Of a stretch of DNA of 64,000 nt, positions 52,829-53,432 are shown in pieces. Location: assembly GCF_040938485.1 (NCBI RefSeq), contig NW_027270939.1, forward strand, positions 434,001 through 498,000, given 5' to 3'. Under the pieces are notes generated by a model. The model was not told the origin of the DNA, made no database searches, and saw nothing but the letters and a program-made list of their open reading frames with translations. Each line of letters starts with the position of its first letter. The first letter of the stretch is position 1. The stretch comes from Diadema antillarum (taxonomy: Eukaryota). The position numbers and the translations under genes are program-made.

Positions 52829-52882
52829 TCTGCCTGACGATGAAGTCGTTTTACTCGGCCCGAAGAATAAGTCTTTTTACTA

Positions 52883-53432
52883 TGCTGGCCTCAGATTTCT
52901 AGGTACCGGTAGCACTAGATCCTATCCAGTCAGCTAACCGCCGTACACACAATGTACAACAAGAATAAAATTGCAGACAGTCGAGTCGAACGTTGCACTC
53001 TTGTCTTTATTGCATTCTCCTTCTTGCTGTGCATGCGCAAGCCCAAATGCGTATGCGCATGTATGTGATGAACGAACGAACAGTAAAAAGACTTGTGATC
53101 TTCCAAGCCTAGAAGCTTAGCCCTTCTGGATGCATTCTGATTGCGATCCTGTCCCAAGGCAGAACCATCAGATGCCAAACTTCCATCCGGGATTCTGTGA
53201 TTATCGTGTGATAATCTTACACATTTTCTGCATTTTTGCTAGACTCACGAACCAGCAAACCGTCGGTTCGTGCGCCATCTTTCTAGCCCATTATGGAAGG
53301 CCCAAAATCACACTACTATATATTGCGTGCGCGCATACATTTCACACACAATCACTGCTACATTTGATGCGCTAACACTAGCCTACGTATGGGAAGCCGA
53401 AATTGCAAAAACAATTCAGCGCGAACAGCACA
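52883..53432 (-). repeat. 5' LTR (550 bp)
   Basis: Starts TGTGCTG and ends GCCAGCA on the minus strand; AATAAA at 53006-53011. Confidence 0.85.

Follow-up and report, generated by a model that had tools for sequence, protein, structure and literature searches.

Self-primed reverse transcription of LTR retrotransposons is documented for the Tf1/sushi elements, and it has also been predicted for Tcn1 chromoviruses and for the TAR/Houba/Osr-1 copia elements of plants (PMC6317226). In Tf1, an 11-nt site directly after the LTR is complementary to the first bases of the element's own transcript, and the primer 3'-OH is probably freed by an RNase H cut of the resulting duplex. A different departure from conventional tRNA priming is found in copia and some plant copia lineages, where an internal tRNA fragment (half-tRNA) serves as primer and the primer site lacks the TGG that matches a tRNA CCA end (PMC6317226). 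For Bel/Pao elements, a survey of the superfamily (PMC3118150) and a study of Sinbad (PMC554778) do not mention primer sites.

Here, we analyzed a Bel/Pao element within a 64,000-nt stretch of Diadema antillarum DNA (contig NW_027270939.1, positions 434,001 to 498,000; hereafter the window, with positions given within it). As in Tf1, no tRNA-type primer site was found and the bases after the LTR (11–14 nt in the ten lineages compared) are complementary to the element's own LTR RNA, with a neighboring second helix predicted. In contrast to Tf1, the complement is not the first bases of the transcript but an internal sequence that exists only once an intron inside the LTR is spliced out, and the domain content is that of Bel/Pao and not of the Tf1/sushi chromovirus clade. 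In contrast to copia, no tRNA sampled from the host matched, and the site covaries with the element's LTR and not with a host gene. We found no description of such an arrangement in the literature we could search.

Structure of the element and its LTRs

The element lies on the minus strand. Two direct repeats are identical over 575 nt (53432-52858 and 48241-47667), but other copies in the genome match the repeat only to position 552 at their 3′ ends. Their 3′ LTRs all stop at CAGCATA and are directly followed by matching 5-bp target-site duplications (TTTAT, GAGTA, CAACT, ATACC). The LTR is therefore 552 nt long (TGTGCTG...CAGCATA), with the 5′ copy at 52881..53432 and the identical 3′ copy at 47690..48241. 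An earlier note had let the LTR end in CA, i.e. 2 nt too early. The element is flanked by the pentamer ATATC (53433..53437 and 47659..47663), and in total 5-bp duplications were seen in five copies here and in four relatives. A polypurine tract, GGACGTTGGGGGGGGGGAG (48242..48260), abuts the 3′ LTR. A TATA-like motif, TATATAG (53316..53322; LTR 111-117), occurs at the same position in the long LTRs described below and is a candidate promoter element.

Between the LTRs lie a 1023-codon gag-protease frame (49715..52786, ATG at 52786), which has no Pfam match and breaks off at the start of RT, and a 398-codon integrase frame (48433..49629) with DUF5641 (E = 9e-26), the rve and Integrase_H2C2 domains scoring just below their cut-offs. 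A 1.23-kb segment of the RT/RNase H region is missing at 50070..50081. Copies on three contigs of this genome (C18, C363, and C1567) keep the segment, and in the C18 copy it matches the Pao peptidase family PF05380 (E = 3.6e-42), with the integrase domains as in the window. The borders of the segment are TT..TT, with a 10-nt filler (CATCATGAGA) and short homology (TGAAAGG), so the loss is not a splice event. The deletion is shared with abundant long-LTR copies (loci L034 and L037), indicating that a non-autonomous sublineage has spread. Protein homologues (61% identity for the best, about 31-46% for most) are unnamed proteins from fishes, frogs, bivalves, a priapulid, a sea star, and marine assemblies; 30 of the 68 carry PF05380. 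The window thus holds a young, RT-deleted Bel/Pao element.

Immediately after the 5′ LTR the minus strand reads TAGTAAAAAGACTT, with no TGG in the first ~90 nt of the leader. The putative primer binding site, GTAAAAAGACTT (52880-52869), starts at the first base after the LTR and pairs with LTR bases 53094-53083 (LTR 339-350). In this copy the pairing extends to 53080: bases 53094-53080 read AAGTCTTTTTACTGT and pair over 15 positions (13 Watson-Crick, one G-U, then U-A), as the earlier note had described. The duplex energy of the LTR segment with the leader was −30.7 kcal/mol, compared to a mean of −13.2 (sd 3.3, best −27.7) for 500 shuffled leaders. The helix was present in both the MFE and the centroid fold of the 309-nt RNA (z = −3.2). 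A second, weaker helix is predicted beside it, in which LTR bases 53098..53109 (GGCTTGGAAGAT) pair with leader bases 52868-52857 across a 3-nt bulge; this explains why the first 25 leader bases are invariant in every 5′ copy read. The leader (52803..52880) consists of three ~26-nt tandem units, each starting with a primer-site-like motif (GTAAAAAGACTT, GTAAAACGACTT, and GTGAAGAGATTT). The number of units varies between copies, and two copies have a perfect second unit. In two copies (C167:96465-96498 and C867:524994-525027) the primer site reads GTAAAAAGACTG instead of ending in CTT.

Introns within the LTR

Most relatives in this genome have LTRs of about 1.7 kb (about 50 such LTRs), which align to the LTR of the window in three blocks (1-274, 275-344, and 345-552). 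The extra segments begin with GTAAGT and end with CACAG at both borders. The first, of ~800 nt, is missing at LTR 274/275 (53158..53159), and the same skip with GT..AG ends was seen in contigs of public runs. The second is missing at LTR 344/345 (53089/53088), where long LTRs read CACAAGTCT/GTAAGT and, 377 nt further on, CACAG/TTTTACC. The LTR of the window is therefore the doubly spliced form, copied back into DNA, and the motif AAGTCT/TTTTAC (53083..53094; the slash marks the exon-exon boundary) spans junction 2. Counting exact 20-mers, 51 LTRs carried the unspliced and 7 the spliced junction-2 word. One copy pair (C1567) lacks only intron 2, and intron-less LTRs occur both with and without the internal deletion, which suggests that intron loss was recurrent.

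The earlier note had taken the motif for a plausible 5′ end of R, in analogy to Tf1. This geometry is not supported, since the two halves of the motif are separated in the parental LTRs; transcription is inferred to begin upstream of LTR position 274, or to run in from the body of the element into the 3′ LTR. A search for public runs found no RNA run, and the four runs analyzed cover introns and exons alike and thus behave as DNA, giving no transcript starts or ends but only the intron-1-less joint that also exists in the genome.

Covariation of junction and primer site in related lineages

Relatives were retrieved by their gag-pol proteins, and their LTRs were defined by self-comparison. LTRs could be defined in ten lineages including that of the window (about 40-60% protein identity to the window's element). 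The nine relatives were a Tara Oceans marine contig (L082), three ENA assemblies (L083, L084, and L088), hake (Merluccius, L085), catfish (Neoarius, L090), bullfrog (Aquarana, L091), scallop (Argopecten, L087), and oyster (Saccostrea, L089). A Priapulus locus (L086) had no clean LTR pair, and an outgroup locus (L092) had no LTR in reach. Two loci of the present genome, L009 and L010 (C1216:127308-127912 and C22:605437-606041), proved to be the same diverged intron-less LTR with identical flanks and added no covariation; together with many paired hits elsewhere, they suggest that the assembly holds both haplotypes of some regions. In L083, LTR-LTR identity ends 13 nt before the primer site (6567-6580) and no target duplication is seen; the 3′ LTR of that copy is probably truncated or rearranged.

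In all nine relatives, the LTR holds one intron with a GTAAGT-like donor and a pyrimidine-rich CAG/TAG acceptor, and the exon-exon junction is perfectly complementary to the 11-14 nt that start at the first base after the LTR. Examples of junctions and the corresponding sites are GAGTCT/TTTTAC with GTAAAAAGACTC, TGT/CCTTTTAC with GTAAAAGGACA, CTGTCG/TTTTAC with GTAAAACGACAG, TCTGAC/TTTTTAC with GTAAAAAGTCAGA, and TAAGGA/TTTTTCAC with GTGAAAAATCCTTA. Splicing in these relatives is inferred from the canonical sites plus the complementarity; only the present genome proves it, through its intron-less copies. Across the ten lineages, all with a GTRRG..YAG intron, the halves of the complement lie 224-652 nt apart in the DNA of the standard elements. 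Positions 1-11 were Watson-Crick in 110 of 110 cells, with compensatory double changes at positions 3, 7, 8, 9, 10, and 11. Each LTR matched its own site best, apart from two pairs of lineages that share the same site and one near-cognate pair (own site on the bullfrog LTR). Shuffled sites rarely exceeded 8 nt, and none of the unspliced LTRs had a contiguous complement of 9 nt or more. The helix appeared in the MFE fold of all ten in-silico spliced RNAs, which were modeled only for short non-coding LTR stretches, and a second helix of 5-12 bp lay beside it. In contrast, a distant Bel/Pao element (L093, 23% identity) has an ordinary TGG-type site 2 nt after its LTR.

In the LTR of the window, AATAAA (53006..53011) lies 69 nt downstream of the 15-position motif and 72 nt downstream of the predicted primer 3′ end (LTR 350). 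Six of the nine relatives show AATAAA or ATTAAA about 10-45 nt into the exon that follows the junction, whereas none or only variant hexamers were seen in the other three.

We also searched for a host source of the complement. Patterns for 15 nt or more of the complement outside the element gave three random-looking sites, fewer than the reversed-pattern control and none a tRNA. The 12-mer followed by a T-loop word gave 11 sites, again none a tRNA. An Rfam tRNA search of the genome yielded only 12 distinct sequences, so that the tRNA set was merely sampled, with a best match of 5 nt; the host tRNA-Lys(UUU) is canonical and matches only 5 nt. Most hits of this search belonged to tandem arrays of a tRNA-Ala-like sequence with a period of about 326 bp (contigs C173, C374, C742, C1364, and C1480, e.g. 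C1364:628-2977), probably a tRNA-derived satellite or SINE array. The element itself had no Rfam match.

Proposed priming by spliced LTR RNA

The best-supported reading, to which we assign a probability of about 0.7 in the absence of RNA data, is that minus-strand DNA synthesis of this family is primed by the element's own spliced LTR RNA and not by a tRNA. In this model, the primer sequence (here AAGUCU/UUUUAC) does not exist in the DNA of the standard element but is assembled when the spliceosome removes the LTR intron. The junction then pairs with the site after the LTR, a cut after UUUUAC, inferred by analogy with Tf1, gives the 3′-OH, and DNA synthesis starts at the last base of the LTR. 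That the duplex is the normal primer is likewise inferred. The model does not by itself explain how most progeny keep the intron, which requires either a 3′ LTR that stays unspliced or priming in trans. In cis, the cut would leave a short effective R, which fits the polyadenylation signal seen 10-80 nt downstream of the junction in seven of the ten lineages, and everything upstream, intron included, would be copied from a usually unspliced 3′ LTR. In trans, a spliced RNA, possibly a short LTR transcript ending at the LTR's own polyadenylation site, would prime an unspliced genome. Either version explains rare intron-less progeny such as the copy in the window. We consider it somewhat more likely than not that a widespread clade of Bel/Pao elements (in teleosts, a frog, bivalves, and marine plankton samples) couples the start of reverse transcription to the spliceosome in this way, possibly with delivery in trans, which would make the LTR a gene for its own primer RNA. 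Such a primer would be a new link between the host spliceosome and retroelement replication and would explain why these LTRs keep a conserved intron. For annotation of this clade, which standard tRNA-based finders will label as lacking a primer site, it suggests searching for a GT..AG intron in the LTR whose junction complements the bases after the LTR.

The main alternative, possible but unlikely, is that the conserved duplex is a regulatory or structural element, e.g. occluding the primer site on spliced RNAs so that only unspliced genomes are copied, circularizing or dimerizing the RNA, or acting as a packaging signal, while something not yet found does the priming. The predominance of intron-bearing copies, which indicates that the copied RNAs are mostly unspliced at the template LTR, and the repeated leader motifs are compatible with this view. 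However, the site abuts the LTR end exactly where a primer 3′ end must sit, it varies between lineages together with the junction, so that a conserved host primer cannot fit it, and no TGG-type site exists in the leader. Furthermore, perfect pairing over 11-14 nt that then stops abruptly is what re-copying of the site from the primer in every cycle would give.

Classic Tf1-type self-priming with transcription starting at about 53094 appears very unlikely. Although the motif is contiguous in intron-less copies and lies upstream of AATAAA, in the standard element and in all nine relatives only 3-6 nt of it lie upstream of the donor, and a first exon that short is implausible; moreover, both introns of this family were demonstrably spliced, and the only TATA-like motif in the LTR lies far upstream. 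A host primer, such as a half-tRNA or another small RNA ending in AAGUCUUUUUAC, seems equally doubtful, even though the tRNA repertoire was only sampled and mitochondrial or unusual small RNAs were not screened, since the site changes in step with each element's own LTR, including between two fishes and between two bivalves. Chance or low complexity is the least likely explanation: the core is A/T-rich, and one of 300 shuffles in one lineage reached the observed length, but the complementarity is anchored at the same base and across canonical splice sites in all ten lineages, with compensatory changes, and the duplex energy lies far outside that of shuffles.

Indirect support for priming came from genomic fossils. 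Locus L011 (1501-1906; C710:2264455-2264860) is a 406-bp insertion with a near-perfect 5-bp duplication, in which LTR 1-350 runs straight from AAGTCTTTTTAC into the reverse complement of the LTR end, turns back after about 22 nt at a palindrome in U5, and ends at the normal CATA. This is the junction expected if the 3′ end of the motif was extended on the primer site. As the left part starts at LTR position 1 and not at a transcription start, the priming strand may have been nascent plus-strand DNA or a 3′-LTR RNA fragment cut at the polypurine tract, i.e. an aberrant event; the fossils thus suggest that the duplex can prime, but not that it is the regular primer. The same 22-nt junction word occurs at two more loci (C8:2850788-2850826 and C75:836643-836681), which have a different sequence and continuation.

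The right end of the window's element (47659-47693) is also unusual. The 3′ LTR is followed by 26 extra bases (47664..47689), absent from the 3′ ends of all other copies read, of which 23 are identical to the first leader unit. The last three are ATA, which this copy's leader (CGA at this position) does not template and which we cannot explain, so that the terminus again reads GCATA before the target duplication. Initiation one leader unit downstream would give an overhang of exactly this length. Finally, relatives were found arranged as LTR-body-LTR-body-LTR tandems (L084:8788-24523) or assembled as a circular permutation (L082:1-6413), suggesting frequent tandem or circular forms in this clade.
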